A stretch of 63,676 bases of DNA, counting the filler, from Klebsormidium nitens (taxonomy: Eukaryota > Plantae > Klebsormidiophyceae): the NCBI GenBank assembly GCA_000708835.1. It is 4 parts of 4 records of this genome, joined end to end, with 100 filler letters (N's around TTAATTAATTAA, not from the genome) between each part and the next. Parts side by side here need not be neighbours in the genome. Positions count along the whole stretch, not along the records: positions 1 to 24,087 come from DF237875.1; 3 more parts are not named here. One strand, 5' to 3'. Below are positions 20 through 24,087 of this stretch, in pieces. The notes beneath the pieces are model-generated. The model searched no databases and was not told where the DNA came from. It saw nothing but the letters and a program-made list of their open reading frames with translations. The position numbers and the translations under genes are program-made. Each line of letters begins with the position of its first letter. Positions within the stretch are counted from its first letter, which is position 1.

Positions 20-472
20 ATGCTGCTCCCGGTGCACTTCTACCGCGGGGCGGACCGGCGAGCCCCCATGCCCAGCGCCGCAGTCCGGGCCTTCTCAGAG
101 AGCTTCCGGCAAGATCTGGACCCGTTCCTCCGGCAGAGCAGCGTCGGTCCGAACATGGCCGCAGAAACCACGTGCGCATACTGCAAGGCCGTCCACCGTG
201 ACGCCCGGTCCCTGTACAAGTGCTCGCGTTGCTCGAGCGTGCGCTCCTGCGGAAGAGAGTGCCAGAAGTCCCACTGGCGGGCTCACAAACAGGATTGCCA
301 GCGGACTGCGAACCTGCGCGCGCGTGAGCCTGCACCCCCCCGCTCGCGTGTCCCCGTCGCCGAGCAGCTGCGGGCGGCGATAGCCGAGCAGCAGGAGACC
401 GAAGAGGATGCGGAGCGCGAGGCCGAGGAGATACGGGCGGCAGTGGCGGCGGCGATTGACAGCGGCGGTTGA
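20..472 (+). CDS. MYND zinc-finger protein (small, intronless)
   Basis: CAYC-x12-CSRC-x5-CGREC-x3-HWRAHKQDC at ~173-298 fits the zf-MYND consensus (the usual YC reads SC). It is followed by an acidic helical tail. Confidence 0.65.
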   Translation: MLLPVHFYRGADRRAPMPSAAVRAFSESFRQDLDPFLRQSSVGPNMAAETTCAYCKAVHRDARSLYKCSRCSSVRSCGRECQKSHWRAHKQDCQRTANLRAREPAPPRSRVPVAEQLRAAIAEQQETEEDAEREAEEIRAAVAAAIDSGG

Positions 473-1892: not shown

Positions 1893-4106
1893 ATGGACAC
1901 TGACCGGGCTGAGTATCCGGATCGAAGAAGACGCCATGTTCAGGATACATTGCACGAGAGAAAGAACGGGAGCGGGCCGCTCACTTTCAGCCTGGGAGGC
2001 CATCAGAACAGACCCGATACCCGAGAACATCATCGTCTCTACCTACTACAACTGAAGAAAAAGCAGATCTCTTATGTCGGGTGTCCATATGCTACGTCTA
2101 CATGCTGTCCTGATCGTGTGATCGTCTACTCTACTCAGATCTGCGTTGTAAGCGGTTATCAGTAAGGGCAGAAGGATCATCATGTTCTCGAGCTTCGAGA
2201 ACCATCCGATCGTGGTGAAGCGGTTGAGGAAGCCGTTCACGCTCTCACACGCGCTCGTGTTCACATGGGTCAGCAGACCGTAGTAGTGACTGCTGTTCGT
2301 GGGGCCGCAGAGATGGATCTCTTTCTCGGCCTTGCCGTAGTGGAACTTGTCGATGACGAACCGGACGTTCGAAAAGAACGTGGGCTCCCGCCTGAAGCAG
2401 TAGTTTTGACCGGAGCAGGAACAGTCGTTGATCAGCACTCGCGGCAGATCTTCTCGGTTGAAGCGGGTGTAGAGCACCGTGAACGGATCTCTCGGGCTCT
2501 CTCCCCGCAGCATGATGTGGATGCCGTAGAGCACCCGATGCGGGCAGCACCACACGTAGAGCCCGCGGGTGTGAGGCAGCTTGCTCGTCTGGTTGGGAGC
2601 GGACTCGTTCCCCGCACAGCGAGCCTCAGCCGTCTTAGATTTCCCTTCCGGCGTCTCGAACTCCGCGTAAAAGGGCAGCGGCCGCTTCTTCTCCCAGAAC
2701 GGGTACCAGCACAGGTCCTCCCCGTCCGAAGTGAAAGCCCCCAGCGCCGGCCCCGTCTCCCCCAGATTCTCCCTGAGCAACTCCCGCTCAGCATCGCCCA
2801 GCAGCTCCGCAGTGTCGGAGAAACACTCGAGCGCCTCCATCGCCTTGTGCGCCGCCGCTATCGTCTCGGGGTTAGGGGGAGGTGGGTTCGGGTACGCGTC
2901 CCACTGTGGCTTCGAGAAGCGGTCCCACCACGCTTTCTGCGGGTCACACCACCACGACGCTCCATGGAAGCGGTCCCACGCCGCGCCTGTCCAGTTGCGA
3001 TACGCGACGCCCCCTCTCCCATAGATGCTCGACTTGTACAGCGCCTTCAACACGCCCATGAAGAACGACGGCGTACGAGTCGAGGAGCCGGCGCAGTATC
3101 GGGCTGTCTTCCCCCCAATCCAGCCGATCCTGCTCGGTGACTCTCTCTCCGAGCACGATCCGTCTAGCCACCCTGAGGGAGTTCTCCGTCTGCAGGATCT
3201 TGCTGTCCTCGTCGTGGCTATTGAGATCGTACATGATCTCCTTCCACCGCTCAGGGAACCGTTGCAGGATGACCGCCTTGCCTGGAGTATCGTCATGGTT
3301 ACGGTCCGCTTCTGCCTCGGCCTCGATCCCCTCGACCAACCATCGCATCGCATAGTGCTCCTTCGCCATCAGACCCCCCAGCAGCACACCGTAGTAGTCG
3401 TTCACGTCTAAAGGCTCGCCCCTCTTCGGAGGATTGTTCGCCTCCTCGTCGGGGTCGGCGTGCTGAGCGGACGGCCGATGTTGGCTCAAGCGCGCCAGCA
3501 GCCTCCGGAGGTCGTCCTCAGGCACCACCCGCCTCACCGTGTACGCCCCGCCCTGCGAACGCGGGAGATGCATCATGCGACATGTTGGGCGAGATTCTCC
3601 CAGACATAGGACCGTGCCAGAGCGGGAGAGTTCCTTCGACATCGCCTCGCGTCGTTAGCGCGCAGCCTGCATCCAGAGTAGGCAGTGCGTATCGTAGGAC
3701 GGACATTCGATCGATCATGACCGAAAGGGCCGCGAAGCGTTGCGCTGTGACTCACCCGGCTGACTCCCGAATAGTGCACACCCGCCGTCCGCATCTTCTG
3801 GAAGGGCACACCGTCCCGCTTATCTGGGTGCGTGAAGCTGGCTCGCTTGTTCTGAGTGGTGGAAGCGATGCCCCCCTTGCGCTCGCTGCCGTCCTTGTTC
3901 GCCAACCCAAAGAGCCCGTCGCAGATCAGATACTCGGGATGAGGCCCGCAGAGGGAACAACAGCGCGGCTCCTCGTACTTCTGCTTCAGCGCAAAGTAGC
4001 CCATCGCGGCCTCTCGCAATGTCTTCTCATCGAGCCTCGGGGATGGCCCGAACTTCGAGCTCACGCTCTTGAACAAATCGCTCTGTCGGCTGAAGTTGCT
4101 CCCACC

Positions 4107-5196
4107 CTGCACGCGAAGACGCTACTCAGAAACCAGAGTTGGGGGGACGGATGCTGTGCTTTATTACCCTCAGGATAAAGGAACCCGCCCATACCACCTC
4201 ACAAGACGCAAGACACAAAGACGCTTTTCTGGGGACGGTCCAAGGATCCTGAACATTTCTCCGACCCAACCTTTCGAATCTCAGAAACTTTTCAAAAAAT
4301 GCGTCTTATTGTCTTACTGTCTTGTACTATATATAACTAAGGAATCCATTAAGGAAATTCTCCCAGGGTCCCTCTACAAGACACATTCNNNNNNNNNNNN
4401 NNNNNNNNNNNNNNNNNNNNNNNNNNNNNNNNNNNNNNNNNNNNNNNNNNNNNNNNNNNNNNNNNNNNNNNNNNNNNNNNNNNNNNNNNNNNNNNNNNNN
4501 NNNNNNNNNNNNNNNNNNNNNNNNNNNNNNNNNNNNNNNNNNNNNNNNNNNNNNNNNNNNNNNNNNNNNNNNNNNNNNNNNNNNNNNNNNNNNNNNNNNN
4601 NNNNNNNNNNNNNNNNNNNNNNNNNNNNNNNNNNNNNNNNNNNNNNNNNNNNNNNNNNNNNNNNNNNNNNNNNNNNNNNNNNNNNNNNNNNNNNNNNNNN
4701 NNNNNNNNNNNNNNNNNNNNNNNNNNNNNNNNNNNNNNNNNNNNNNNNNNNNNNNNNNNNNNNNNNNNNNNNNNNNNNNNNNNNNNNNNNNNNNNNNNNN
4801 NNNNNNNNNNNNNNNNNNNNNNNNNNNNNNNNNNNNNNNNNNNNNNNNNNNNNNNNNNNNNNNNNNNNNNNNNNNNNNNNNNNNNNNNNNNNNNNNNNNN
4901 NNNNNNNNNNNNNNNNNNNNNNNNNNNNNNNNNNNNNNNNNNNNNNAAGGATCCTGAAGATTTCTCCAACCCAACCTTTCGAATCTCGGAAACTTTTCAA
5001 AAAATGCGTCTTACTGTCTTACTGTCTTGTACTATATATAACTAAGGAATCCATTAAGGAAATTCTCCCAGGGTCCCCTCTACAAGACACAATAATCTGC
5101 GCGGACGAGCCCTCTCATTTCCTCCCCCCTCACCCTCAGATTCAAACTGCCTTGGAATTCACAATCGGAACGAGGACCTGGCACGAAGTCACCTAC
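4107..5196 (-). other. Phase-0 GT-AG intron of the KDZ gene (contains N-gap 4389-4946)
   Basis: On the minus strand, donor CTGCAG|gtaggt and acceptor gtgcag|GGTGGG. The join gives LLAGLQ|GGSNFSRQ in frame. Confidence 0.75.
4242..5091. repeat. ~145-bp direct repeat on both sides of a gap (probable collapsed tandem array)
   Basis: 4242-4385 and 4947-5091 are near-identical but differ at several bases (aaggatcctgaa...ctacaagacaca). Confidence 0.8.
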
Positions 5197-7899: not shown

Positions 7900-8345
7900 G
7901 ACGGTTGTAGAGAACCCTAATTATGAAAATTCGTGGCAACCCACCAGCTCATATCTGAGTGAATTTTCGCGCCCACCTGTTGAGCTACATGCTTGTTGCA
8001 GAGAAACCTGAAGAGGGATTCGTGGCCTCATCGGGTCATGAGTGCTTTTCGTGGCACCGCCGGGCTAGAAAAAGCTACATACAAGTTGCCGAGAACCCTA
8101 ATTCAGCAAAATTCCGTGTCATTCCGTGTCCCCATCAGCAGGTGCCAAGAACCTCAATTCAGAAAGTTATGTTCCCGAGTTATTTGCGAGCTATAAAAAG
8201 CTACATGCAAGTTGCCGAGAACCCTAATTCGGAGATATTCGTGTCACCATCAGCCCATGAATGTTTGCGCGCCCACCATCGAGTTAAAAAAGTTTCATGC
8301 TAGTTGCGGAGAACCCTAATCAAGAGAAATTCGTGTCCACCAACT
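7900..8345. repeat. Degenerate repeats containing the motif gttgccGAGAACCCTAATTc
   Basis: The motif recurs at ~7911, 8092, 8148 (variant), 8218 and 8310. Confidence 0.7.
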
Positions 8346-8426
8346 TGAGAGCTTTTGGAGGCCACTGCTGAAATTCAATTTCCACTGCTAATTTGAAGGC
8401 AGAGCAAGAACCTGTTGCCAGTGCAT

Positions 8427-8875
8427 GAGCTTCCCACCGCTGTGAACCATGCCACCACCTTTTCAAAGACAAAGCCAAGCTCAGAATGAGTTCTGACCAG
8501 AATGCCGAGTCCCCGGTGCCTCTGAGAACCATGCCATCACCTTTTCAAAGACACAGCCAAGCTCAGAATGAGTTTTGGCCAAAATGCCGTANNNNNNNNN
8601 NNNNNNNNNNNNNNNNNNNNNNNNNNNNNNNNNNNNNNNNNNNNNNNNNNNNNNNNNNNNNNNNNNNNNNNNNNNNNNNNNNNNNNNNNNNNNNNNNNNN
8701 NNNNNNNNNNNNNNNNNNNNNNNNNNNNNNNNNNNNNNNNNNNNNNNNNNNNNNNNNNNNNNNNNNNNNNNNNNNNNNNNNNNNNNNNNNNNNNNNNNNN
8801 NNNNNNNNNNNNNGCTCAGAATGAATTCTGGTCAGAAGGCTGAGCTTCCCAGTGCCGCTGAAGAATCATGCCACA
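8427..8875. repeat. ~82-bp tandem repeat spanning gap 8592-8813
   Basis: gaaccatgcc.caccttttcaaagac..agccaagctcagaatgagtt occurs at 8444 and 8526, with a partial unit after the gap. Confidence 0.75.
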
Positions 8876-9842
8876 TGTAAAATTCATGCTAAGTCCTGAG
8901 GTCAAATATAGAGACTTTCTGGTCAGGAGCAAAAGAGAGATTGTGACCTGTCAAGATGATATGCCCGCCAGTGCTCCAATGCTGTGCGCCGCCACCGTCT
9001 CAAGGCTGCCGCTGCTGGTGGAGTGAAGTTGCTACAGAGAAGCTTCTGTATGATGGTGGGCTGAGAAGAATGGCGGCGTGGCGGCGGAATGCTGTGTCTG
9101 AAGAGAGCTTGTTTTGCGAGTGGTGTCCCTTCTGGGATCTGGAGACTGCCCCAGAGCTCTGCAGGCCCGGCATTGTGTGCCATGACTGTGTAAGCGTTTC
9201 CAGGTGTGTGGTGCAGCTTCCAGCAACCATGGAACGTGATCTGTAGCTAAGCTTTCGGTCCGTGGTGCTGCGCCCAGTTGATGTTAGCTATCAGCTTGGT
9301 TGTGAGAGGAGACCACGTTCGTTTTAGGTTGCAGACTGGCTGGACTGAAGCAGAGGTTAGAGTCGGACATTTTATTTAGAGTGCTGGTAAACTGCCCGTC
9401 CTCCATTTTCATTCGGGGGGGCACCTAGTTTTCAGGATAGGCTGGGATGTCGTATGCTAGATAATTCCCTTTTTTCAGAGCCGTCCGATGGTGCCCCGGG
9501 CACTTTGGACCGGAAGATAGCCCTAAAAAACCAGAGCTCAACCCGGTACTGAGACCTTCAATCTACTTTGATTTAGGAATCATTTAATCGATATATTCTG
9601 GCGTTCCGTCCGCTTATCAAAAAGTTTCAATGATTGATGAAAGCATCGCAACGGGGCGCCAGAGAAACGTGCGCATCGAACAATTATCAGAGGCTTAATT
9701 TGAAACTTCTGAGCGGTCGATGAAGCAGCTTAAACCGGCCGACGGTAGGGATCAGCAGGATAGCTTGTCGTTTTGTGGCACGAGTCCGAAATCTCGTTAA
9801 TTTGCAACGTGGCACGTGAGAAGGTTTGTTGATTCTAGGTGT

Positions 9843-9969
9843 CTCCTAGCCAACTAGAAGGTAGACCACGACCTTCAAATTTGACTCGGACGCGGTGCCG
9901 CCGTCACGCGCGGCGCGCACTCTATAAATTGAGCGTCGCACCGCAGACTGCCAACACTTGTGAAAAATT
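9843..9969 (+). repeat. Left TIR of the MULE
   Basis: The 37-bp segment 9867-9903 (cacgaccttcaaatttgactcggacgcggtgccgccg) is the perfect reverse complement of 21161-21197. Degenerate identity extends on both sides. Confidence 0.85.
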
Positions 9970-10384
9970 CAAGACTCGGGGTCGGGAGTCACTGCAGTCT
10001 CCTTTGTGACATAGGTACTGTAGGTACGGCCTGAGTTGACCCGGCAATAATTGCTCCGGATTGATCACGTCTGCAATTCTGTTTGCAAAGCTGATTTGTA
10101 GATCTGCTCAGCTGGCCCCAGCTGGTAGAGATTAGGCTAGCTCAGAGCTTTTGCATTACAATGCTGCAATGCTGATCGGTCTGCTGATCGGTCTGGCCTT
10201 TAGCATCTGCAAGGCTCCCAACTTGTAGGCCGCGGAAGCAGCTGAAAATCCATAAACTTGAAGCACGGAGCAGGGCGTCGCGTCTTGGTCCTCTTGTACG
10301 ATTGTACATCCCAGCTGAGACATTCTCATAGCTGACAATCACTTCGAATCTGCTGTTGAATACAGTAAGTCGGAGTGTTGAGCT

Positions 10385-11191
10385 GTGACTGGGAGCATGG
10401 AACCTCAGCTCAGCTTCCAAAACCACCTGCTAAAGGATCATAGTGGAGAATTTGTTGTCTCGACTGCGTTCCTGAGCCATGATCAGAGCACACTAGGGGG
10501 CAGCGGGGCCTGCACGGTGGCTGCTTTATATGCTGCAGAGGCCCTGCATCATCTTAAGGAGAAGACCGGGCTGCTCCCAAGCAATGAGCATTATACACAA
10601 TTGTGGCAGCTAAGCATTCGCAAATGGGAGCTGGTCAGGAAAAAGAGTTTCAGTCCTACTACCACCTACGGGCAGGAGTTTCCAAGTGGTTATCTCCCTG
10701 TGAAAACTGCAATAGAGGCGACCGGGTTGCCTATCAAGGAGTTGTCGTCACAAACTGCATTAGGTGCTGATCTTGGTTCCACCAGTGTTGACCTGAAAGA
10801 CTGGGGCCTCACCAACTCCTTTCCAGAACTCTTCTTTGAGGCAATGAACAGTTCTGCGGATGAGCTGTCCACAGGAGGGTTCAGGCAGTTTGTGATTGTG
10901 CACAGGCAACATACTTTCTTGTTGAGCTCACAGAAGAGCTGCAAGTGCCAAGCAGACAGTGGGACCGATTGTTCAAGTTGCTCATCAACCGTGATCATAA
11001 CAGACAGCTTAGGCAAGATGCTCATTGAGAATGGGACACAAGGCTTTGTTATGAAGTTTGAGGGCTCTCCAACAACCCGGTCTGTGCCCTTGATGCTGCA
11101 CTGCGGGCCCTTGAGTGGAGATTTCAAGAGCGTTGCGATGTGCGCCGGCTGCAGAACGTCACCAGCTTGGAAGAGTTGTACAGCGGACTAG
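10385..11191 (+). CDS. Papain-fold cysteine protease exon, herpesvirus tegument DUB (peptidase C76)-like
   Basis: HDQSTLGGSGAC (Cys codon 10511-10513), then IVHRQHTFLL and VIITDSLG. The Q..C..H..D order and spacing resemble UL36/BPLF1-type proteases. Judged by eye only. Confidence 0.5.
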   Translation: MTGSMEPQLSFQNHLLKDHSGEFVVSTAFLSHDQSTLGGSGACTVAALYAAEALHHLKEKTGLLPSNEHYTQLWQLSIRKWELVRKKSFSPTTTYGQEFPSGYLPVKTAIEATGLPIKELSSQTALGADLGSTSVDLKDWGLTNSFPELFFEAMNSSADELSTGGFRQFVIVHRQHTFLLSSQKSCKCQADSGTDCSSCSSTVIITDSLGKMLIENGTQGFVMKFEGSPTTRSVPLMLHCGPLSGDFKSVAMCAGCRTSPAWKSCTAD

Positions 11192-13021
11192 TGGTCGAAT
11201 TCTCTGAGGTCGCTTATGACGCCACAGTGCTGCCCAGCGCAACCTTGAAAGCTCCTTCGACGGTTGGGTTCTCTCGTTCCCCCATCCTTTTGGATCAGGT
11301 TAGGAAAACCCTCCTCACCTCACTGAGTTCATTCTCTTACTCGAACCTCAATGTGGACCTCTATGAAGTAAGGAGTCTGCTGCAGGTAATCACTCAAGCT
11401 AGCAATTGATCAGTTCGCTTGCAAATCTGTGCCTACCCCCTCTCAGACTAATTGGTTCATTGCATACATGGATGTGATTGTGAGAGTTCTGCGTTGTTGT
11501 TTACAAACTTATAGTTGTCCTCCTGTTCATCGGATCAAGGCAACTTTCTCTTTCATGGCATCAATAGTTGCTTTTGATTAAGAGAGTTTGTTTTGTTCAA
11601 AGTGCTTCTGTTTCAAACAGCAAAAGGCGCTGCCTTAAGCTAGCATTTCTTGGTTGTGGTCTCACAGGAAGCGACCTGATTGCGAAGTATGGACTTCAAG
11701 TTTTAATGGTTGATCATTGCGGGGCCTTCACCTTTCAGAGTCCTAAACTCACCTTCGAAGTAACTTAGCACAGGCCTTCTAATATAGGTGCTACCTGATC
11801 AACATGGAATAATGCTCAAGCTGCAAAGAGGCAATAGCTGAATGCTTATTGCTGTTAAGAGAGCTTAGCCGGATTGTGAGCTCGTGCAGCTTGTCGAAAG
11901 TGTTTATGTTGCTGCTCTTTGGTGCAGGCTGCTCTCAGTACGCCGCCTCGAGGCAAGCTCACCGAAAGCGCTGCCAATCAGTTCAACAGCATGTCCACGC
12001 CGCTCAGATCAACCGCTTCGCCTCTCCTTAAGGTGCCTCAGGAAAACCTCTCTTCTCCCTCTTTCGTTCTACTCAAACTGATGTACCGTTTGTTTTGCGT
12101 TCATGTGCTGATCAGTGTCTTGAGAGCCGAAAGTATTGGAGTATTATGATAATCTGCTTTTTGAGCTCGCCCTTGGAAGCAAGTGCATCGATCTTGTCAG
12201 ATTGTCAAAAAAATAATGTTTGTCAGCATGCTTTAAAACATAGAGAACAACACGTTTTATTTTGCTGACAAGTGCTTTCCAGTCTTGGATGAAAAGTTTC
12301 TTCAATTCAGTTCCCTTGCAAGCTGGACGCTTCGGTCATTCCTGTTGAAACAGAGGTCCTTGTTCTATCACCCAGATTCTATGAGCCCCAAACCGGACGG
12401 ACCCGGATGAGCCCCAACCCACCCAAAAGATACTTTCAGCTGGTGTGCTCCACTTGGATCAGTAACTGGGTTCTCGTTTGTCACGATGCAGACGCCAATC
12501 TCAGGGAGGACGCAAGAATTGGGCGGTGCTGCAGCTGCGGTGAGCCCAAGCATCAAGTCGCCAGCTCGGGCGTCTCCTCGTCAAGCCGGAAGGGTAAGTA
12601 CGCCTGATCTTTCGTTCCCCGATGGTCTGAGTGTGTGAGTTAGCAAAAGTTAGACAAAGCCAGATTCTTGTGACTCAACGAGATTGAGAATGAGAAGCGT
12701 TGGCAACTAGTCTTCAGCTCCAACTCGTTCTTTCCAATGACATGCCCGAAGACTGAGCTGAGAATGATGCTCAGACCCGGAATTTCTTCTATTCGAAGCA
12801 AGATGTTTGCCAGTCCCGTCAAGGGCGAGGAAAGGTCCATTCGTGCTTTCAAAGTAGAGCACTCAACTTGCCCGAATTCTTCTATCACCAAATAACTTTC
12901 GGCCGTGACAAAACTGTTGGTCGAACGGAACGGTGTGAGTTGGAATGCTCTACAATCTGAGGTCTAGCTCGGAAGACAAGCGAGTGCGACTCGAACTTAT
13001 GCCAACCCCATCTTTTTGCAG

Positions 13022-13915
13022 GAACGGTCTAGACTCTTTTCGGAATGGGCCACAGTTCGGGGTCCCGGCAGAGCCTCAAATCTGAGCCCCTCGAAACCCA
13101 GCCGTCAGCAGCCCATCACGACTAAGAACAGCTTCGACATCTTGATGAATCTCGAGGTTGGTGACTTCGGAACAGAAACGGACTCAGCCGCAGTGCCTCC
13201 TCCCTTGCCAGAGTTTGTCTACGTGCAAAACATCTCGAGAGGAGGGATGATCTACGAGCTTCCGGTCCTCTCTTCCGAAACGTTGTCGGAGTTCGTGGAT
13301 AGAGTGGGAGCGAGGGTCAGTTTGCCGGAAGCTGCCGGCCGGAGAGTGGAGATTCGCCTTCAGTCGTCTGCTCTCGCTATCGCAGACGGTGATACCCCAA
13401 TCAGCTGCACTCCCATTAAAGCTGGGGGTACTGTAGAGTTCGAAGCTTACCTAAGATGCTCAAGGCGGAACCATGTGCAACCTTTATCCTTTTTTACGAA
13501 GTTGAAAGGGGGCCGCCTTTCGAAGACCTGCATCGAGTGTGACCGGTCCGGAAAGTCGGAAGAGATGCGTACGGTTGGGGGTTCGTTGGGGGTACCTGGA
13601 CTTGACGCGCCTCTACAAGACGCGTCCGCGGTTGGGACCACAACGAGTACCCAGCAATGGTGCGCAGGCTGCAAACGCTTCAAGTCGCAGGACGTTTTTC
13701 TTGGGCGGAAAACCTGTTCCCCGTGTCAAGCGCGCTTAGCTTGACGGAACCAGGGTCGCCCACAAAAGAAAGCCGCCAAAATTGCGGCCAGGGACGGGTC
13801 CGCTCCTGCCGCGGGGTTGCAGACAACCATCTCAAAAGAATCTCAAATGAAGAAGGCGCCCGTGAATACGGAGACGGAAAAAGGGGATGGCAGAAAGCTT
13901 GAAGCACCCGTCCAG
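13022..13915 (+). CDS. Exon encoding a ubiquitin-like domain plus two CxxC..CxxC-type fingers (in-frame TGA at 13742-13744)
   Basis: Acceptor tttttgcag| at 13021 and donor CAG|gtaggt at 13915, both phase 0. FVYVQNISRGGMIYELPVLSSETLSEFVDRV...DGDTPISCTPIKAGGTVEF aligns with the ubiquitin pattern. The frame stays open after the single TGA. Confidence 0.6.
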
Positions 13916-14498
13916 GTAGGTACATGACGTTTGCACGAGAGTGCTCATTTTTCTGGTTGACTCCCTTTGGTTCGACAGACAAGCTCAACATCAGGATGCT
14001 TAAATCATACCCGAGGGACGATCACGACATGGAAGTAAGTTTTGATCCGTATGCTTCGACTGAATTCGGAGCTTTTTGTAGTGCGCACTCCAGAGAGACC
14101 TAATCTGCTTTTGTATTTTCACTCTTCCTTTGACCACCCAAACGCCGCTCCTCCAAGGCTTTTGGATGTGAAAGACCGCGGAATCGGTTTCCGCTCTTGT
14201 CCACTGAGGTCCAAGCTTTTGTTTCGGCTGTCCTCAGATTCTCAAGGTGATTGGCACTTATTGCCAACAAGAAAGCTTAAATCCCAGTGTCAAGAAGCTT
14301 AAGTTCTTCAAGGATTCTTCGGTTAGAGGTGTCGTCGCTTGGTGAACGTTCTCCTCAAGGTGGATCAGAAAGCGCCAATGTTTTCAAGTACAACAGTTGA
14401 GGTCATCAGCATTACGAATGCCCTCAAAGTAATAAATAGAGTATGTCCGTTGACATGCTTGTCATCACATGTTTACAGGCTGTATGCATCCTCTACAG

Positions 14499-15609
14499 GT
14501 GTTGAGCTTCGAAACAGAGGTTGCGTTCGAAGCTTGGAAGGTGGAGGAAGAAACGATCGGCGGCATCGACTTACTTCTCCGTCGCGACGATCCAAGCAAG
14601 CTGGTGGACACGGAGGATGCTTCGTTCAAGGGCGAGGACCCGTCTACTTGGGTGGCCAAGGCCGGTGCTCGGATCCAATCAAATTCTTCTCTCAGGTATT
14701 GGGAATATAAGTGCATGTGTCACGGGAAGTCCAAGTCCAAATCTGCACAAGATCTGCCTGTGAGTCTGCGGCAACCTGTTTCTGGCGACGATCCTGAGCA
14801 AGCAGGCTCGGAGGAGACGCTTCAGGATCGACTTTTGCGCCAAGCACAGGAAGACGAACGCCGATCTCGGCGACTTGCTCGAAGGGGGCTCGACATCAAG
14901 TTCTCCAACAAGCTCGACTGCAAATACCGCTTCACAGCAACTACTGGTGTAACAGCAACCAGGCAAGTCCTACTCTGATGTCAAAGTTTCTAGAAACGAG
15001 ATCCTCTTTGCATTGGTCTTGAGAAGTTTCATACTTTGATCCTGCTCCCCGGACCAATCGCTTACCAGCGCTTGGTTAAAATGGCCTTCTTTGGGAGCTC
15101 CTGGACATGTCAAGCACGCCTGCAAAAAGTCGAAGAGCGCCGGCGAAACGCTTTTCGGTCATAGGTCCGTCTTCAAGCAAAAAACCGCTGAATAAGGTCC
15201 TTACGCTCGATTGGAACGCCAAGTCCATCGAAATGTCCAACTCCAGATGGCAATCTCTGCTTTTGCCGCTTCCCTTGACAGTTGCGACCTCGAATAGCCT
15301 CGGTGAGCAGATAATTGGCAGCATACCGGTCTCTTGTAAACGAGCTTTGCGATTCGAATGAACCACAGCCGAAGTGACTGTAGAAACGCATCCTTTGCAG
15401 GGAAGCAGGCGTGGTTACTGTCAGGGTTTTTGGATCGCACCTGCCTTCATGCGGCGCAGCGCACTCGTACAGAGGATTAGACAAAGGTCTGCGTACCTGG
15501 ATAAAGATGTTATTGGATCTGGGATGCTCGCCTGCTGAGATCGTCGACTACATCAATACTCCTTCGACACTGCCCAGTGGCATACCGTCACCTCCGGGGC
15601 CCCCAAAAG
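14499..15609 (+). CDS. WRKY/GCM1 (FAR1-like) DNA-binding exons of the MULE transposase (14499-14962, 15401-15609)
   Basis: LSFETEVAFEAWK...YWEYKCMCHG...SNKLDCKYRFTAT|..VTVRVFGSH. A phase-2 GC-AG intron at 14963-15400 restores the frame. Confidence 0.65.
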
Positions 15610-16114
15610 GTAAGAGTCCTTGCATGAAGACGCGGGTCCAATAGACAGGTGTTCCCGTAGAGTATCCTGACAGTTGCACACTCACCGCCCCAACTTTCTG
15701 TGAGTTGAACGCAACGAGCTGATAGTGCTAGGCTTCGCACCTGATCAAAACTCCGCCCCATCGGGCCAAGCCTTATTCTGTTGTCAGGAGGTATTTGAAG
15801 CGGGTACCTCAGCTTGCATCTATGCTCGATGGTTGCCACTTCTGACGTGCTCAAAGAGGCCCATGAACTGAAGCTTGTGCGTAGAACTGAAAAAGTAAAA
15901 CATTTGTTACACGTTTGCCGTTCAAAGGCTTTACCGATCTTCAACACCAAGAGTCAAGCCGATCCGAGCTCTGCTTTTCTGTCAAGCTGAGAATCGGTCG
16001 CAACAGTCGGGGCCGCACCTATCAACTGGTGGAAGCACTGAAACTGCAGATTTGCACTCTTCGCTTTAGGTCACTTCAATATGAAGCTAATTGCGTTTGT
16101 TTTTGTGATCGAAG

Positions 16115-17316
16115 GTGATGGACCGGAACCCTCGCATCCACGCTGGTCGCCTCAGGAGAAAGACATTGAAAACATGCTACAATCAATCAGGCGTGGCAAA
16201 TATCTCGATCCAAATGATCAGACCGCCATCTATGAGTTCCTCAAGGGTCATTGTAGAGCTGGGGCGAAAGCTCAAAACCAGGACCAGCCGGGCACGACCG
16301 ATTTGAACAAACTTCTTGAAGGGATTGATGTGCTGGAGTATCAGGAATTCGAATGTCACTGTCATGGAGACTCTACAGATGTGGGTATAGGGACTCAAGC
16401 TGCAAGTAGGATTGGGAAGCAGAGATTGACGAAAAAGCTCTGCAAAAAGAAGTGTGAGCACGGACCGCAGTGTAGACCATTTATTGCGGTTCTCCAGAGC
16501 CCGTGGCAGCGGCAGGTCTTAAGTGAACTTCATCAGAAGCGTCTTGCAGGTGTCTTTTGCTTGGATGCCACTGGGCAGACAAATCAGTATAGGTGGCCAC
16601 TATCGGCTTTAGTGTTGCCAGACGAGCAAGGTCATGCGGTTCCTATAGCTTTTATGATTAGTTCCACAGAAAGGGAAGAGCCTCTAGAGGTCTTCTTTAG
16701 GGCGATTCAAGAGGCGTGTCCAGTAACTTTCAAGCCAAGAGCCTTTAGCATAGACATGAGCGACGTTGAAATTAATGCCATTAGGAAGGTGTTTGAGGAT
16801 AGCGTAGACATTCGTATCTGCTTCTTCCATGTCATGCAGGCTTGGGAGCGTTGGCTGAAGCGCTCAGCCAACAGAGTATCCGAGCCGCAGAGAATTCTCG
16901 TTCCCCGGTTGATCAGACAGATGAAGCTAGCCCCGGATCTGGAACGCTGTCAAAAAGCCCACAATCTCCTAGTTGATTATTTAACGTCAGAAGATTTGGA
17001 GCAGGTTTTAGTTCACTTAAGAAGGGATTGGATAGGGAGTGACAAGAGACCGGTCTATCGAATGTGGTGCAATGCATTTCGAACGAAACGAATTAGGTCT
17101 TGGTATAGGATAGAGACAAACAATCTGGTTGAGCGCTTTTTTAAGACTTTGAAGTGGCGGTTTTTGGAAGGAAAAAATAACAAACGGCTAGAGCGGGTCC
17201 TAGAGGTACTCACTATTCAGGTATGCAATTTCTATGTAACCAGGAGGAAGCACGTGCTGGCTGGCCGAAAGGCCAATTGGAAGCTGTATGAAACGGTGTT
17301 GGACAGAGAAAAGAAG
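16115..17316 (+). CDS. MULE DDE transposase core exon
   Basis: CLDATGQTNQYRWPL, FSIDMSDVEINAIRKVF, ICFFHVMQAW and ETNNLVERFFKTLK are all present, so D, D, CxxH and E are intact. Phase-1 acceptor at 16114 and phase-0 donor at 17316. Confidence 0.9.
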
Positions 17317-17740
17317 GTGAGGCTCGGCCCTGCACATTCTGGGCGAAACGACTTCGAGAAAGGGGAAGGTTGCTTCTACAGCGAGCATCTAGGATTCAAT
17401 TGAGGGGCACCATCGAGCCGCATTGTTGCACAAATTCCGCTTCCATAAATCAGACAGTTGAGTTACTAGCAAGCCGGCCTCCTCACTTGATTCGTTAGGC
17501 TCATGGCACGACGTGACGAAAGCTGGCTAAACTACGGGCGCCTGAGAAGTTTTGGCACTTGTCTTGCGTTGCGTCTTTTGCGAAGACATTCTCGTGCAAG
17601 CGCTTGAGCTCTGAAATGCACGGATTGCGCGTCTTGGTGCACTAGCAACTGCTCATGACGTTCGCTTTCCGAAATGAAGTCGTCACTGTCCAAATATGTA
17701 TGTTTTCTTCTTTTGACACGCTCTTGCGCTTTACAACACA

Positions 17741-17967
17741 GCTGGTGCTGTCACGGTTCTCGACAACCAGTCGGGCCATGCCGAAGTAGCGTCGAAGGCC
17801 GCACTTAGCGTGCTTGCGGCTGCTGCAGCGGCGAATGATAGTACTGCAGCCCGTCCGCAAACTGGGATGACGACTGAGAAGTTGTACACCGTCGTTCTCA
17901 GGGGTGGGTTTTGCGACTGTGAGGATCCAAGCGGACTTCTCTGCAAGCACATAAGGGCAGTGGCGAG
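17741..17967 (+). CDS. SWIM zinc-finger exon of the MULE transposase
   Basis: KLYTVVLRGGFCDCEDPSGLLCKHIRAVAR|gtaaga (CxC-x7-CxH). Not present in the ORF track; translated by hand. Confidence 0.8.
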
Positions 17968-20900
17968 GTAAGATACTACGGTCGTAAGCTCGCGGGCAAG
18001 CGTCTACAGTTCAGACCTGGTACTGTGGTGATTGATCCACATAGCTCAATGCTCTTAATTATCTGGCGTGACTGATTATCCGTTACGGTTTTGAAATTTC
18101 CAAAAGACGCAACCAGCCGCGGCCCTTCTCTTGGCCCCGTCATCCGTGGCAGAGCGAACGAAGTTCGTTCCTTTTGCAAATCCAGTTGTCCCGAACTGAA
18201 GATACATGCACAGCAGTGAAACCATACGTATCATGTTCTATCAAAACCAGCTTCGACAAGCACTCCGGACGTTTGTAGTTGACTTCAAATGAATTTGTTC
18301 CTGCTCGGTGTTGTTTCCTCCCCGCACGCTCCGGTTGGATGATCCCATGTGGACGATCGACCATTTAAAATTGGACTTTAAGGTTCAAAAAGCTTGACCA
18401 CTGCTGGGCCGGTCCCATTTGCTCACCGCATCAGGACAACCTATTCAGGACCAAAATGCAGGCCCCGTTACGAAGCCAGGCCCGCTCTACATGCTTGGGT
18501 GTGTAGATGTTGTTCCAATCTCGCTTCAGTATGTTCTTATTTTAAGGTCTCACATCTTTGCAGGAAGCTCGGAGGGCTGGAGAAATGGAACCTTACTCTG
18601 GACAGCTTGCGAGAGGAGGTTTTGATGGAGGTAAAAACGGCCGAGATGGAACAGCAAAATGTAGACCTTGAAAATAATGTCGAGACGGAAGCGGGTGGGG
18701 TTGACTCTGACATGGAAGACGGATTTGAAATGAACAGGACCGAGAACGACGAGGTGAAGGCGTTGAGCAAAGAGGTGCACGGTGTCCTCGACAAGATTTG
18801 TGCTGTGGAGCCCTGGAACAATGCAAAAGGTCTTCTCAAAGAGGTGAGCTGATCTGGGTCTCCGAGGTGCACAGAATGTTGGCTAGTATTTTGTGCAATA
18901 GCCTTGAATTCGTTCCGAATGAAGATTGAAAAAGAAGACTTGACGGGCCCCATGATCTTCAGAATCCCGAAGGACATCTTCACTGAAAGTAGGACAATAT
19001 ACGAGTGTTTTGTATCAGCGCAAAGAGACGTCAGAATGATTTCTTCCATGCACCGACTTTGAGTTCGCGGGAACAACTAGGGTCCTTCAATCACGGACTC
19101 TATTTGAAGGAGAAATCTCAGGAATGAATAGGCAAGGCTTTCTATTTTTGCACAATTTACAAGAGAACAGGAGGTGCATGCCGTTGCTTTGGGCCTATCT
19201 GCTGACCGGTCACCGAGGCATCACCTCCAAACTCAATGCGCTGGCCTGGAATCCTTGTAACCCACTAAACGAGAGTCTTGAGTTGTCGAGCTTTGGAATG
19301 CAGGTGCTCATCCGAGTGACTGCTGATCTTAAGCAAGAAGAACGTAGGTTGAAACCAAAGTCCTTCACACGAAGCAAGAAAAAGAAGGGAGCAAAGCGGA
19401 AACGCAACGCTGCGACGCGAACGTGGTGGAAGCCCCCGGCGTGACTGCCTCAAAGCCTCAGGTAAATATTGAGGCTTTCCGTTCGAGCCTGTTCGTTATG
19501 TGAAATAGACCCGAGCACCAACTTTGCAAACCTGCAGATCAACGTACCGTTGATGTCCAGATCTTGTGAGGCGTCAGATCAGTGTACGATTCCCGCATTT
19601 AACTCTCCAAAGTAAAATGATAGAGCTCTGGTGACAAAAGATCAACGCGTCGGGGAAAAGTGATGTTCGAACAAATCCGCTCCGAGCAGGTTTCACCTCA
19701 GATGCTTTCTTCGACGATTGCTTGATTAAATTCTGAACGGCGCGGCGCATGTTATCCTCTGTCAGGTCTCGGCTGGCTGGGTTGGATTAAACATGGGGTC
19801 CCGTCCAAAGAGAGCAAAGCAGGCTGATCATCCAAGGCAGGCTGAGGATGAAGCGGCAGTATCAAGACTAACTACAGAGTTGGCTGCAAAGGCAAGTACT
19901 TGACCTGCAGTACTGAGACTGTTCTTCGAATCGACTTTGACCGTGTCAGGTTAAAATGCCAATGCTGTTGTAGATTGCTTGAATGTTACATGGTGAGCCG
20001 AACTTGATGAAAGGTTGACCAAACAGGGACTGCGGACCTGCACTAAAAAGAAGAGTACTTGGTCGAAGATAAGGTCATGACTTGACAGGGGACTGCTTTG
20101 CCCTAATCGGAAGCTGCGAAACTGAGCTGCAGAACTGATCCGTCATGGGCTGCCACTGATTCAGATTATTCCGACCCAGTCCGAGTATAGTACGCTGGGG
20201 TATTTAATGAGGCACCATCGCGTTTGTCAGCTTTGAAGCATCCTGCCCACCGCAAAATGGATGAGCAACCTGCCCGCACAGATTGACTTGGATATGAACT
20301 TCTCACTTGCCGAGAGCTGCCGCGGAGGCTGTTTCCCCCGCTCCTCCTGTTCGCTCAAAGCAAGAATCCGTTGCAAGGTATAAAGATAAGAAGGCTAGGC
20401 GAAGATAGGTCTGGCACGTTTCTGATGGAACAGAGACCAAGTTTGCACCCGTAAGACCCGCTTGTAGTCACTGCTTGCAATAAGTCAACCATTAGCCTCG
20501 GCATGCAAGTGTCCAATACATTGAGCCTACTATGTACAGTACGCGCTGGTCTCTTAGTCTTTTTTCTCTGGCTCACAGTATCATTGTTGAAACATGGAGC
20601 AGTGGCAGTGAACTTGGGAACTTGCAAACCGGGCCTCTGCGCTGTTGATCCATGACAAGTCAGATGCACAGATGCACACTGGAATCGATGTCGAGCTTGA
20701 CCATCTGCATGATTGTCTCCTGCCATTAAATGCTGAGTGAATCTGGCACCCGACTGCGGAAGCATCATGCAATGACAGCCGCTAATCCGCCTGCTCATCA
20801 TTGTAATGAATTATAATATCGAATGCATTGGTGCACAACAATCACTGCCAGCAGCAGACCATACATCATCTTGAAAGATCTTAGGGACGTGCATTGTAGT

Positions 20901-21080
20901 TGGGGCAGCTCATTAATGAATTTCAATCATTCAGCGTGCATGAGAGATCGCTGGCCCGCCAGCTGCTGGGAGACAGCTCGCATCGCCGGAGTTCCGTGCT
21001 GAGGCTTAGATTCAGAACCAGCCGCGCGCGCATAACGGTCTTACGTACCGAGTCGAGATTCGTCGGTGAACCGTGAAGAG

Positions 21081-21234
21081 AAATTTTCACAAGTGTTGGA
21101 ACTTGGCAGTCTGCGGTGCGACGTCAAAGTTATAGAGTGGGCCCGGGGCGTCGCGCGCGGCGGCGGCACCGCGTCCGAGTCAAATTTGAAGGTCGTGCTT
21201 CCGTAGGCTCTACCCAACTAGAATGGGCTAGGAG
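21081..21234 (-). repeat. Right TIR of the MULE
   Basis: Reverse complement of the left TIR, including the blocks ttttcacaagtgttgg, ggcagtctgcggtgcgacg, tatagagtg and ggctaggag. Confidence 0.85.
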
Positions 21235-22127
21235 GGCGACCGCCCTTCGGGCGGTCCCGTCCTGGTATGGGCTTCGAGCCCGGGACCAACACTGAGAAAC
21301 CAGGTGTCAAAGGGTCCGACGAAGGCTTTGCCTGGAGAATGGGACCGCCCAATCCGACTCGCACTACAGCGGTCTAGTCCGATCTGTACGTTTTATGGCC
21401 GATTGGCCGGAAACTTACCGTACTTATACCGACCATTGCTTACATGCCCGGTGGATGATTGCCGGCCGGTTGCGACTCTGGCCGGTACAAGTTTCACGAT
21501 GTTTTTAGGGCTGCGGCCCGCGGGCTAGAGGCCTTTACTAACCGACGGCTGAAATTGCGAGTGAGCGCACGTTTTCAAAAATATCGACGGCTACCGTGGC
21601 AAAATTTTGTCGTTTTGCAAACGTGCCGATATGGACGACTGAGATGGGGCAGAAAATATGGGCCGACGGTGACGATACGACGCAATCCCGCAGTTTCGTT
21701 AATTTGCAGGCTTTTTTTTCGGGTTTTGCACCTTCGCGCGTGAATCTGACCGTCTCCTAGCCAATAAGCAGCAAACTTTTCAACAAACACAGGTGGGGTC
21801 CCACTCACAGCCAAGACATATAGGGGAAAAGAAGAGAGAAAAGAGAAGAAAAGAGGAAAAAGAGAGATATAAGGGACTGAATAATTGCTTGTATAAGACG
21901 ATATCAGGATTCGGAAATGGACCCCAGGGGCTAGTTGGCCGTTCGATACACTAATTAAGTCACCGATACCGTCGGTGATCATTAGAAAGTCACTAGGTGA
22001 CAAACAAATGACGTTGCATCAAACTCTATTTCACGCGACTCGGACCTCGGTCTATAATCGACACGTGGTCTTTTTGACACGCGGCCCAATCAAAACGGCG
22101 GATTTTATGTCCATGTCCCTATCTGAG

Positions 22128-24087
22128 TTTTTTTTTTTTTTTTTGGACCGTCTGGCACGTGCAGCTCATCAGGTGGAAACTGCAGACTAGCATACGCCTC
22201 AAGGGCAGGGGAGCCGCAGCAGATTTTACATCATCTTGTTGGAGAGTCGAGGCGACGACGTTTGGTTTGATGACCGGTGGTACCAAAATGTAGTTGCGAA
22301 CGGGAGGAACGATGGAACACATGAGTGGGTTGAGAGGCAGTCGGAGAAGAATTAGATGTGGGAAGATTTGGAATCTGATCGTTGTAGACCTGGTGGGAAA
22401 GTACGGTAAAGTGGCGGTGGCAACGACGGGGACGATGAGAGCTTCATAATGATCAGTTCCGTCATAAGCAATGTGCATGATGCGTTGGGTGAATAGTGGT
22501 GCAGTTGATGAGAAATTAAGGAGAGGATGTAGAGGAAGGCCGGTGACTGCGGACCAAATCATAAGTGGAGCCTGCAGATAGCGCGCGTATGCAAGAGCCT
22601 CAACTTCAGTTGCCCAGTTGCCCGGAATTGACATGTAGCTGCTGTAGCGAGCGGGTGTTGGAAACGGTTCGCTTGTAGTTGATAAGAAGGCTGGTGTGTC
22701 CTGATGAACAGCATTGATCTGATGCGTATACGTGTCCCAATTTGTTACGATTGTCTGTACGCAGGCAATGCGAAGTGCGTGATGATCAGAATCAGATCGA
22801 CCGTGTGCAAGGAGAATGGCGCGAAAGAGGCAATTGCCGTCGCCTTGCACCAGGCATCGTGTCAATCGACCTGTAAAAATATGATGAGTGGTGTGAAATC
22901 TAAGTGAAGTGGGCGGTGTATGAGGGCGTAGAACTGAAGGCTCGGTAAAGTGGTGGAGGGCGTCATTGGACAAATTAGGCCGTGGGGAAGAGTACGAAGC
23001 GCAAGCAAGATGTGGAGGAAGAGTCTGAGGAGAAGGGGTTACTGTAGTGCGCGGCGTGGAAGCGGGCGATGGGATATCTGGCGAACTGGACAGGTGTAGC
23101 TCGTGCCAGCATTTGGCAAACGCAACATAGTCAGTGTCGTCCATTTCATGGAGAGGTTTCATTTGTGGGAACGCATGAAGGCGATCTTTGAAAAGGTGAT
23201 GGCGTTCCTTGATGAGTGCACACCGGTCGCGCCAGACATGCTGGAAGAATTCGAAAAGTGCAACGTGTAGCTCCTTACCTAGTCGAGTAGTCTGAGAAGG
23301 AGTGGGCAACCGAGATGAAAGCCAGACAAATAAGGAGTGGGGTAATTGTCCAGCTGAAAAGAAGCGCAGACGGTCAGATGGGACGTGAATAAGAGCGTCG
23401 TATAAGTATGCACGGAGGGCAGCTGTAGTGGTGCGAAGCAGTGCGCGTGAGCGGCAAATAGAAACCAGTCGGGTGAGAAGTTGCTGACGATGACCAGCAA
23501 ACGTCGGGCACTCATAGAAAAGGTGCTCGGTAGTTTCTGAAGGGTGGCTGTCACAGAGAATGCATAGCTCATCAGAATATAGTCGAGGTCTAATGGTGCG
23601 TAAACGATGGAAAGTTGAGAGCGTACGACCAAGTATTTGTATAAGTCGTTTTTTGTCAGCTGAATCGCGTTTAGCGTATAAAATAGATAGAGAAGGTGCT
23701 TGCCAGATGCTGACCGTAAAGAGTAGCTGGTGCCATTCGCCGCGGCCTAGGTAGTGAAGGGATCGATCTGAGGAATATGCATGGGTGTATACTTTGATGG
23801 GGTTGTTTTCGAAAAGAACGGCGGCGACTGGAACTGCGTCAAGAGGCGGCGGCAGAATAACGGTGACAGAAGGTAAAAATTTTGTTTCAAAAGGCACTAA
23901 GAGGCGTTGAGTGAATGATTAAGGCTAGATTTTGCCAGAGTATCGGCAACTTTGTTCCGTTCTTGGTGCCGAACAAGGTCAGAAAGGTGATCAAATGACC
24001 CATCAGACGTCGGGCAATGATCACGTTCATGAGCCTTCACATGTACATCGGATAAAGCGGGGGTCGCCGGTAAGGTGCCGGGCAGTG
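22128..24087 (-). mobile_element. 3' end of an L1-like non-LTR retrotransposon with zf-RVT, OTU protease and poly(A)
   Basis: ORF 22119-23897 contains CILC..ETTEHLFYECP, then VQGDGNCLFRA...WATEVE...YDGTDHYEAL. T17 at 22128-22144 is a minus-strand poly(A). The 5' part runs into gap 24088-24187. Confidence 0.75.

Follow-up and report, generated by a model that had tools for sequence, protein, structure and literature searches.

The sequence analysed (the window) is a stretch of 63,676 nucleotides, filler included, joined from four parts of the genome assembly of Klebsormidium nitens (GCA_000708835.1), and all coordinates given here count along the whole joined stretch. Within the part derived from DF237875.1, positions 9860-21214 are one copy (11,355 bp) of an autonomous-type DNA transposon of the Mutator superfamily (Mutator-like element, MULE), whose exons upstream of the transposase, among them one for a candidate cysteine-protease domain, are the main subject of this analysis. 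The region is bracketed by a pair of terminal inverted repeats (TIRs), ~112 nt long on the left and ~137 nt on the right, with indels between the arms (end alignment); their longest perfect stretch is the 37-bp core already noticed in the original prediction (9867-9903 versus 21161-21197). GGTAGA forms both termini, the right TIR reading ...TCTACC as its reverse complement, and a perfect 9-bp direct repeat, CAACTAGAA, abuts both of them. Its length lies within the 8-11 bp of target-site duplications (TSDs) of MULEs (PMC6446971), which is the size that had been named as a check on the element. The chance of finding a perfect 9-mer at matching offsets, given tens of offsets per side, is roughly estimated at a few in a thousand. 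Because the TSD directly adjoins the matching GGTAGA termini, 9860 and 21214 are the true bounds; the outer ends first proposed (9843 and 21234) were rejected, since the TSD falls inside them. The outer CTCCTAGCC arms sit beyond the TSD and belong to a palindromic target site, which in the reconstructed empty site (9821-9859 joined to 21224-21262) has the form CTCCTAGCC-N10-GGCTAGGAG, the letters in order being CTCCTAGC-CAACTAGAA-TGGGCTAGGAG. The left flank (9786-9860) recurs at 21688-21771, ~0.5 kb beyond the right end of the element. From this repeat and the palindrome it follows that the MULE inserted into another repeat or a foldback-like sequence.

When all plus-strand reading frames of the element were searched against Pfam, the MULE DDE domain (PF10551, E 7.3e-14, profile positions 1-98 of 99) was found at 16552-16839, a ZSWIM-RNaseH-type match (PF21056, E 2.8e-6) in the same exon, and a SWIM zinc finger (PF04434, E 1.5e-4; 21.6 bits versus a gathering cutoff of 19.6) further downstream; beyond these, nothing was matched. 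A DDE domain, long TIRs, a TSD of 8-11 bp and a C-terminal SWIM finger, the features by which the Mutator superfamily is recognised, are all present, and the original assignment of the element to this superfamily was correct. A C-terminal SWIM zinc finger is common, but not universal, in MULEs. Scans of the window for Rfam families, tRNAs and tandem repeats returned nothing relevant, and RNA genes were not found; a search with the 37-bp TIR core gave no match.

An exhaustive search with the first open reading frame (ORF) of the element returned 5 representatives among 1.8 billion proteins, and the contigs of the matches were compared with the window. They yielded two diverged sister copies from JGI metagenomes. 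One (L003) contains the protease-like exon, the bridging exon, the middle exon with its zinc fingers, all three exons of the pre-DDE region and the beginning of the DDE exon, in the order and with the spacing seen in the window, and in the other (L005) the series reaches as far as the third exon of the pre-DDE region; a further contig, L001, spans the 3′ half of the DDE exon, the SWIM exon and the downstream exons. The same-strand order of coding blocks that had been read from the window is thus borne out by conserved blocks in the window, L003 and L005, and the sister copies that were to be expected if the protease and middle exons belong to the element exist and keep these exons. Amino acid identity of the shared exons to L003 and L005 is 47-79%; at the nucleotide level, the three lineages are ~65-75% identical in exons, and their introns are unalignable. 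Compared exon by exon, nucleotide identity ranges overall from 0.54 to 0.93 at codon positions 1 and 2 and from 0.27 to 0.51 at position 3; the values for positions 1/2/3 are 0.63/0.68/0.38 for the protease-like exon, 0.60/0.70/0.34 for the middle exon and 0.68/0.75/0.37 for the DDE exon. Judged from this conservation, the upstream protease-like and middle exons are genuine coding parts of the transposon family, and selection has long preserved the N-terminal domain within the element. Further family members were found neither by word-index searches with P0004 (one of the homologous proteins) and with the middle exon nor by a metagenome scan with the protease alignment, and TIR homology, looked for in the sister loci, was not found. 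An intron of L003 contains a short stretch resembling the TIR core (15457-15489), and L001 has a second DDE-start fragment at its 3′ end (3200-3320); the genomes of origin may thus have nested or tandem copies.

The copy in the window is defective, carrying a frameshift and a nonsense change upstream of a DDE exon that is still open. A -1 frameshift lies between 11059 and 11083 relative to L003, L005, P0004 and P0007, all of which read through; a small intron at this position was rejected because the gap measures 23 nt versus 24 nt in L003 and the homologues read through. An in-frame TGA occupies 13742-13744, where the sister copies have AAG or AGG (K/R), and homology continues in frame beyond it; a CGA-to-TGA change is a plausible origin. 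An intron over this TGA was rejected for the same K/R codons, which are followed by a conserved continuation in frame.

Exons were compared singly, and the one joined model, P0003, was used only for mapping onto the DNA. This GenBank model (GAQ92124.1; KFL_009260030), the representative match for the first ORF, joins exons by phase-0 GT-AG introns when mapped back. It is unreliable, skipping the DDE exon and detouring exactly round both lesions. The MEP start codon, which opens the protease-like domain, is conserved among the homologues, and both the bridging exon with its gtaagt donor and the start of the middle exon are kept in the sister copies. Because of the conserved start, the conserved bridging exon and donor, and the phase-0 GT-AG junctions of the deposited model, one long multi-exon gene on one strand appears to be the simplest reading, and a polyprotein is plausible from the arrangement of the exons. 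The alternative that the protease-like and middle exons form a separate accessory gene (compare mudrB or VANC-type ORFs), with the transposase on its own mRNA and no polyprotein, is considered somewhat unlikely. MULEs often bear extra ORFs (PMC6446971), and the openness of the DDE exon despite the frameshift and stop upstream would suit two genes, as would the visible errors of the sole joined model; every exon, on the other hand, lies on the same strand, and P0003 links the basic tail of the middle exon to the first pre-DDE exon (w1) via a GT-AG junction; signs of an internal promoter or terminator were not found, no search aimed at them having been made. A distant MULE on L002 (1-2695; Logan SRR27758069), with 35% DDE identity and fewer introns, also bears on the question. 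In it, the zinc finger, the pre-DDE Cys/His region and the DDE region are nearly contiguous and thus grouped, and its available sequence lacks the L(K/R)GG motif and, over the 1.3 kb covered upstream, a protease. In L003 and L005, in contrast, the frame is open past the zinc ribbon into the basic tail, and there is no conserved stop.

The alignment of the N-terminal domain family contains an invariant Asp-Gln (Gln30) and a Gly/Ala-rich lead to an invariant Cys39, a His172 in the window, L005, P0006 and P0008, and, after a Cys-rich insert, an invariant T-D-(S/T)-L-G motif (Asp203), the spacing from His to Asp being 31 residues. Gln30, Cys39 and Asp203 are unchanged across sequences of 33-51% identity. 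In the AlphaFold model of this domain, which is of low confidence (7-row family alignment; mean predicted local distance difference test score (pLDDT) 39.9, predicted template-modelling score (pTM) 0.41), the Cys is placed at the N-terminus of a helix, with the His and the Asp falling on consecutive strands. Searching the PDB with this model (Foldseek) returned AvrPphB (1ukf, E 7.7e-4) at the top, together with M48 (2j7q), a tegument deubiquitinase of cytomegalovirus, the structures 8adb, 8adc and 8add of viral tegument-like deubiquitinases (VTDs), ZUP1/ZUFSP, lymphostatin and Josephin-type clippases; with a query of such low pLDDT, 8 of the 9 top PDB fold matches are nevertheless papain-like proteases, and in a library of viral structures, N-termini of herpesvirus large tegument proteins dominate the fold matches. 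The control, a model of the middle region with similarly low confidence, gave no such matches, so the list is not the product of poor modelling alone. A papain-like fold belonging to the YopT/VTD structural class is moderately supported by this, and the domain looks like an unclassified cysteine-protease-like family of ~300 residues, with the canonical Cys-His-Asp order on a similar predicted scaffold. It is therefore probable, albeit not by a wide measure, that the MULE gene starts with an unclassified papain-like cysteine-protease domain, which is followed by the bridging exon, a zinc/L(K/R)GG region, the pre-DDE region, the DDE and SWIM domains and an acidic/basic tail. The original prediction had given the element a cysteine protease of its own in place of Ulp1. 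An exon under constraint, the conserved Gln, Cys and Asp, and the fold matches speak, if indirectly, for this protease, and Peptidase_C48 was not detected in the tested plus-strand frames of the element; the domain matched no protease profile. The structure prediction that had been recommended to decide the matter delivered papain-like matches from a low-confidence protease model and nothing for the supposed ubiquitin-like stretch.

A number of observations weigh against a protease-led gene of this kind. Neither Pfam, searched up to E 10 with 7 family members, nor sequence and profile searches of the PDB, including 2J7Q and 8AD*, provided any match for the protease-like domain, the confidence of its model is low as stated, and the TM-scores of the fold matches are 0.3-0.5 only. 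The family is tiny in the databases, as the few representatives recovered from 1.8 billion proteins indicate. In P0004, a decaying copy, His172 is replaced by Leu, which leaves the residue in 4 of 5 lineages. L003 and L005 bear stops and shifts of their own, so that 3 of 3 copies are damaged and none is intact; the frameshift in the window may be an assembly error, which is less likely for the TGA stop. The invariant L(K/R)GG of the middle exon is separated by 17 residues from the putative last strand of the preceding stretch and stands between the likely zinc ligands His94 and Cys113 (alignment numbering), and it may therefore be simply structural, which argues against an exposed cleavage site. 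Finally, stand-alone homologues with 33-35% identity exist (P0008 on L004, 10001-11035; P0006 on L006, 270-1241), and MULE exons or TIRs are absent within 10 kb on either side of them. The domain is thus not exclusive to the transposon; each of these homologues may be a gene of the host, a copy that was domesticated, or a component of some other element. Whether the exons belong to a separate host gene had been posed as a possible refutation at the outset; the exons sit inside the MULE family in three lineages, and homologues of the protease-like domain also occur outside MULEs. An HMG-box ORF is found 8 kb upstream of P0008 in L004.

In another reading, the N-terminal domain would be a conserved non-catalytic module, for instance one with a regulatory or protein-binding role, its residue pattern and fold matches being coincidental or the relic of an inactivated protease. 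The low-confidence model, the want of a profile match and the loss of the His in P0004 are in line with such a module, and inactive VTD-like domains exist in Drosophila (PMC9741609). This explanation is nevertheless unlikely: Gln, Cys and Asp are invariant at 33-51% identity, the only exception among the lineages for the His is the decaying copy, and the enrichment of thiol proteases among the fold matches is far above that of the control model.

What defines VTDs is an invariable Asp-x-His together with an active site in mirror image; YopT and AvrPphB use a conventional Cys-His-Asp arrangement (PMC9741609). A conserved D-x-H is absent from the family alignment; D-(S/T)-L stands at the corresponding place, with the candidate His 31 residues upstream. 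Because the defining Asp-x-His is absent, the N-terminal domain is, on the evidence of its alignment, not a member of the VTD (peptidase C76) family. Of the label "herpes-tegument-like" that the domain had received, a fold-level lead from a poor model survives at most, the Asp-x-His test having failed. Erven et al. propose that VTDs arose by active-site flipping from a YopT-like precursor in some eukaryotic species (PMC9741609). It is conceivable, if rather doubtful, that the domain of K. nitens is a transposon-borne eukaryotic relative of the tegument deubiquitinases (DUBs) that retained the canonical Cys-His-Asp, that is, a "YopT-like precursor" before the flip, and that it matures its own polyprotein or strips ubiquitin-like (Ubl) modifiers at or via L(K/R)GG.

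In all three copies, the middle region has three CxxC pairs in addition to an invariant His and an L-(K/R)-G-G-R that is likewise invariant. The zinc ribbon formed by the last two CxxC pairs is the only confidently modelled part (AlphaFold, 2-row alignment; pLDDT 73-78). It bears a weak but recurring resemblance to the second of the zinc sites in plant SBP domains (PDB 1ul4, E 0.12; Pfam SBP, E 0.024 on L003 at 13148-13285; SPL5 with Foldseek), and a weak likeness extends to the SBP nuclear localization signal when the basic tail that follows the ribbon is included (ribbon and tail together, 13661-13741). Thus, the CxxC fingers of the original prediction, which had been counted as part of a ubiquitin toolkit, are real, as all three pairs are invariant, but in appearance they are closer to an SBP-like or DNA-binding module than to ubiquitin machinery. 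The PDB searches also returned an oddity, Pir2, at E 0.0034.

A full ubiquitin toolkit, in which a true herpes-tegument-like DUB (VTD/C76) is paired with a genuine β-grasp Ubl domain ending in LxGG, is improbable. DUB-type and viral papain-like proteases cleave on the C-terminal side of LxGG, the L(K/R)GG motif does not vary among the three copies, M48, the VTD structures and many herpes large tegument proteins rank with the best fold matches, and a strand-strand-helix-strand arrangement was modelled at 13211-13453, albeit with a pLDDT <50. By our own reading, and not by a test, the sequence pattern also resembles that of ubiquitin. At its protease end, such a toolkit is contradicted by the conserved Asp being followed by S/T and Leu where Asp-x-His would be required, and by Peptidase_C76 profiles finding no match in the three copies; at its Ubl end, by the position of the GG described above, well after the last strand of the prediction and flanked by likely zinc ligands. 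Searches of Pfam up to E 10 in the three copies and of the PDB gave no ubiquitin-family match to the middle region, which a divergent β-grasp could escape, and the best Foldseek match of the middle-region model had an E of 0.94, that is, none fell under 0.9. With no profile match in three copies, a pLDDT <50 and no fold match, the Ubl label gains no support.

The pre-DDE exons (w1-w3) share a Cys/His pattern, CxC, an insert and then C-x22-H-x3-C. An insert-containing WRKY-GCM1 family is known in MULE transposases (Babu et al., PMC1702500), with which the w1-w3 pattern is compatible; this is a resemblance and not a test, and the region is a candidate DNA-binding region on account of its ligands. 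FAR1, WRKY and DBD_Tnp_Mut had no Pfam match in the versions of the window, L002, L003 and L005, and the PDB was blank. The WRKY/GCM1 label first attached to these exons is therefore not upheld by a profile match in any copy, and only the ligand pattern agrees with it.

The reading as Pack-MULE-style cargo, with the upstream exons being recently captured host fragments that have no role in the element, is highly improbable and largely refuted: gene capture in MULEs is known (PMC6446971) and a protease-like homologue lies outside any MULE (L004), but the upstream exons show a DDE-like codon-position signature, which excludes recent cargo, and a constraint equal to that of the DDE exon, the same exons occur in the same order in three lineages ~30% apart at the nucleotide level, a transposase is present, and the conserved start codon of the protein lies in the protease exon.

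For a MULE gene that starts with a papain-like cysteine-protease domain, the following course of events may be envisaged. The element would move by cut-and-paste, its DDE transposase acting on the TIRs of ~110-140 bp and making 9-bp target duplications. Transcription would start from the left TIR, with TATAAAT (9923-9929) as the putative promoter box; promoters in MULE TIRs are known (PMC3310237). One long protein would be translated, and its DDE/SWIM part, guided by the Cys/His-rich candidate DNA-binding regions, would excise and reinsert the element. The protease, presumably active in intact copies, might trim ubiquitin or a Ubl modifier from the transposase or from chromatin, or cleave its own protein, and might thereby help the transposase to survive or mature, by analogy with Ulp1/OTU in MULEs and VTDs in Helentrons. 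Similar roles have been proposed for Ulp1/OTU in MULEs and Ginger (PMC2836005; PMC1702500) and for VTDs in Helentrons (PMC9741609). The features of the element are compiled in Table 1.

Table 1. Features of the MULE copy of K. nitens (coordinates of the whole joined stretch).
Feature	Position	Strand	Evidence
Left TSD copy CAACTAGAA	9851..9859	.	Perfect direct repeat abutting terminus
Left TIR, starts GGTAGA; 37-bp perfect core 9867-9903; TATAAAT 9923-9929	9860..9971	+	Inverted-repeat alignment
Exon 1, N-terminal cysteine-protease-like domain, conserved start MEP	10397..11298	+	Homologues P0004, P0006, P0008, L005; donor GT at 11299
Candidate active-site residues in exon 1	Gln30 10484-10486; Cys39 10511-10513; His172 10910-10912; Asp203 11003-11005	+	Family alignment
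Small bridging exon ...SPARASPRQAGR, gtaagt donor	12492..12593	+	Kept in L003 and L005 including donor; in GenBank model P0003
Middle exon: zinc-binding region and basic tail	13022..13918	+	Conservation in L003, L005
Parts of the middle exon	Possible β-grasp-like 13211-13453; invariant His 13472-13474; L(K/R)GG 13502-13513; CxxC 13529-13540; CxxC-x14-CxxC zinc ribbon 13661-13726	+	Three-copy alignment; low-confidence model for 13211-13453
Pre-DDE exon w1, ends in CxC motif	14496..14750	+	55-66% amino acid identity to L003, L005; Pfam blank
Pre-DDE exon w2 (...LDCKYRF...)	14799..14963	+	Conserved in L003, L005
Pre-DDE exon w3 (H-x3-C-x3-H)	15393..15602	+	70-79% amino acid identity to L003, L005; contiguous with w1, w2 in L002
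Open DDE transposase exon, 440 codons	16081..17400	+	PF10551, PF21056; 77% identity to P0001/L001
SWIM zinc-finger exon, SWIM 17885-17965	17717..17968	+	PF04434; conserved in L001
C-terminal acidic exon	18562..18846	+	Conserved in L001; part of P0003
Last exon of GenBank model, basic tail	19307..19441	+	Conserved in L001; part of P0003
Further L001-conserved block	19778..19906	+	tblastx 49% over 43 codons; tblastn E 4.5e-13
Right TIR, ends ...TCTACC	21078..21214	-	Inverted-repeat alignment
Right TSD copy CAACTAGAA	21215..21223	.	Perfect direct repeat abutting terminus

The scaffold around the MULE is rich in transposable elements (TEs) and looks like a TE graveyard. On the opposite strand, 0.9 kb from the MULE, a 592-codon ORF (22119-23897, minus strand) contains matches to zf-RVT (E 5.8e-4) and OTU (E 1.5e-7; DGNCLFRA) and has a lysine/poly(A)-like end; the frame upstream of it (23898-24086) is interrupted by many stops. 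The ORF resembles the 3′ tail of a 5′-truncated non-LTR retroelement, and a second, unrelated TE-borne protease of DUB type (OTU) is thus present on the same scaffold as the MULE. Further away, there are a weak match to a Kyakuja-Dileera-Zisupton transposase (E 0.006; 2046-3353, minus strand), a MYND zinc finger (E 6e-9; 20-472, plus strand) and, within a low-GC patch (7900-8600), clustered direct repeats of 26-71 nt. An assembly gap of 557 N (4390-4946) lies between 131-nt direct repeats of 97% identity (4242-5077), which most probably represent the overlapping ends of contigs that were placed in one scaffold but not merged.

Among known systems, the MULEs of plants, hydra and lancelet that carry Ulp1 (C48; KI-MULE type, as cited in PMC2836005) resemble the element of K. 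nitens in belonging to the Mutator superfamily and in keeping, as part of the element, a thiol protease of clan-CE/CA type with a link to Ubl modifiers. They differ in that no C48 match is found here, the domain occupies the N-terminus and belongs to an unclassified family, and the host is a streptophyte alga. The residue order differs as well, being His-Asp-Cys in Ulp1 and Cys...His...Asp in the domain of K. nitens. The OTU MULEs of Medicago truncatula (Babu et al. 2006, PMC1702500) are similar in that a core of WRKY-GCM1, DDE and SWIM is fused to a papain-like protease, and self-processing of a polyprotein has already been proposed for them (PMC1702500). Their protease, however, is an OTU and C-terminal, whereas the domain of K. 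nitens has no OTU match, is N-terminal and is parted from the core by the zinc-binding region with L(K/R)GG.

The VTDs of Helentrons and of herpes large tegument proteins (Erven et al. 2022, PMC9741609; 2J7Q, 8ADB-8ADD) are, with AvrPphB, the best fold matches and share with the domain of K. nitens that they can be transposon-borne. In contrast to their Asp-x-His, mirror-image site and rolling-circle Helentron context, the latter has a canonical His...Asp, D-(S/T)-L and a cut-and-paste MULE around it, and no detectable sequence relation to VTDs; plants and algae are not mentioned in PMC9741609. YopT/AvrPphB (C58; 1UKF), proposed as the structural class of origin of the VTDs (PMC9741609), provides the top PDB fold match of the (poor) model and has the canonical Cys-His-Asp order, but its members are bacterial effectors and not DUBs, and the domain of K. 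nitens differs from them in having no sequence or profile match, the 31-residue His-to-Asp spacing and the Cys-rich insert. In Ginger1 elements with OTU or Ulp1 (PMC2836005), a DDE transposase gene is likewise combined with a thiol protease of the ubiquitin/SUMO type, and the same functional speculation has been made; they belong to an integrase-like superfamily, carry another protease family and live in animal hosts.

The category as such, protease-bearing MULEs and tegument-like DUBs in transposons, is therefore known. The original prediction that the architecture had not been described does not hold for MULEs with Ulp1/OTU or for Helentrons with tegument-like DUBs, both of which are published, and it does hold for this protease family, its position and its host. 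New are a protease family without a Pfam model, the N-terminal position together with an LxGG zinc module, and the host lineage; in the literature, no paper was found that links Klebsormidium to Mutator elements or MULEs to this protease class.

Several superfamilies of transposons have independently acquired thiol proteases of the ubiquitin/SUMO type (Ulp1/OTU in MULEs and Ginger, OTU/VTD in Helitrons), and the host in the present case, a streptophyte alga, stands close to the base of the land-plant lineage. Should the fold link fail, the element would be an ordinary defective MULE with a conserved, uncharacterised N-terminal domain. If the fold link to AvrPphB and the tegument DUBs is true, however, the domain would bear on the origin of the tegument-like DUBs, and protease and LxGG module together would constitute a tractable system for studying transposase processing or the countering of ubiquitin-dependent control by the host.

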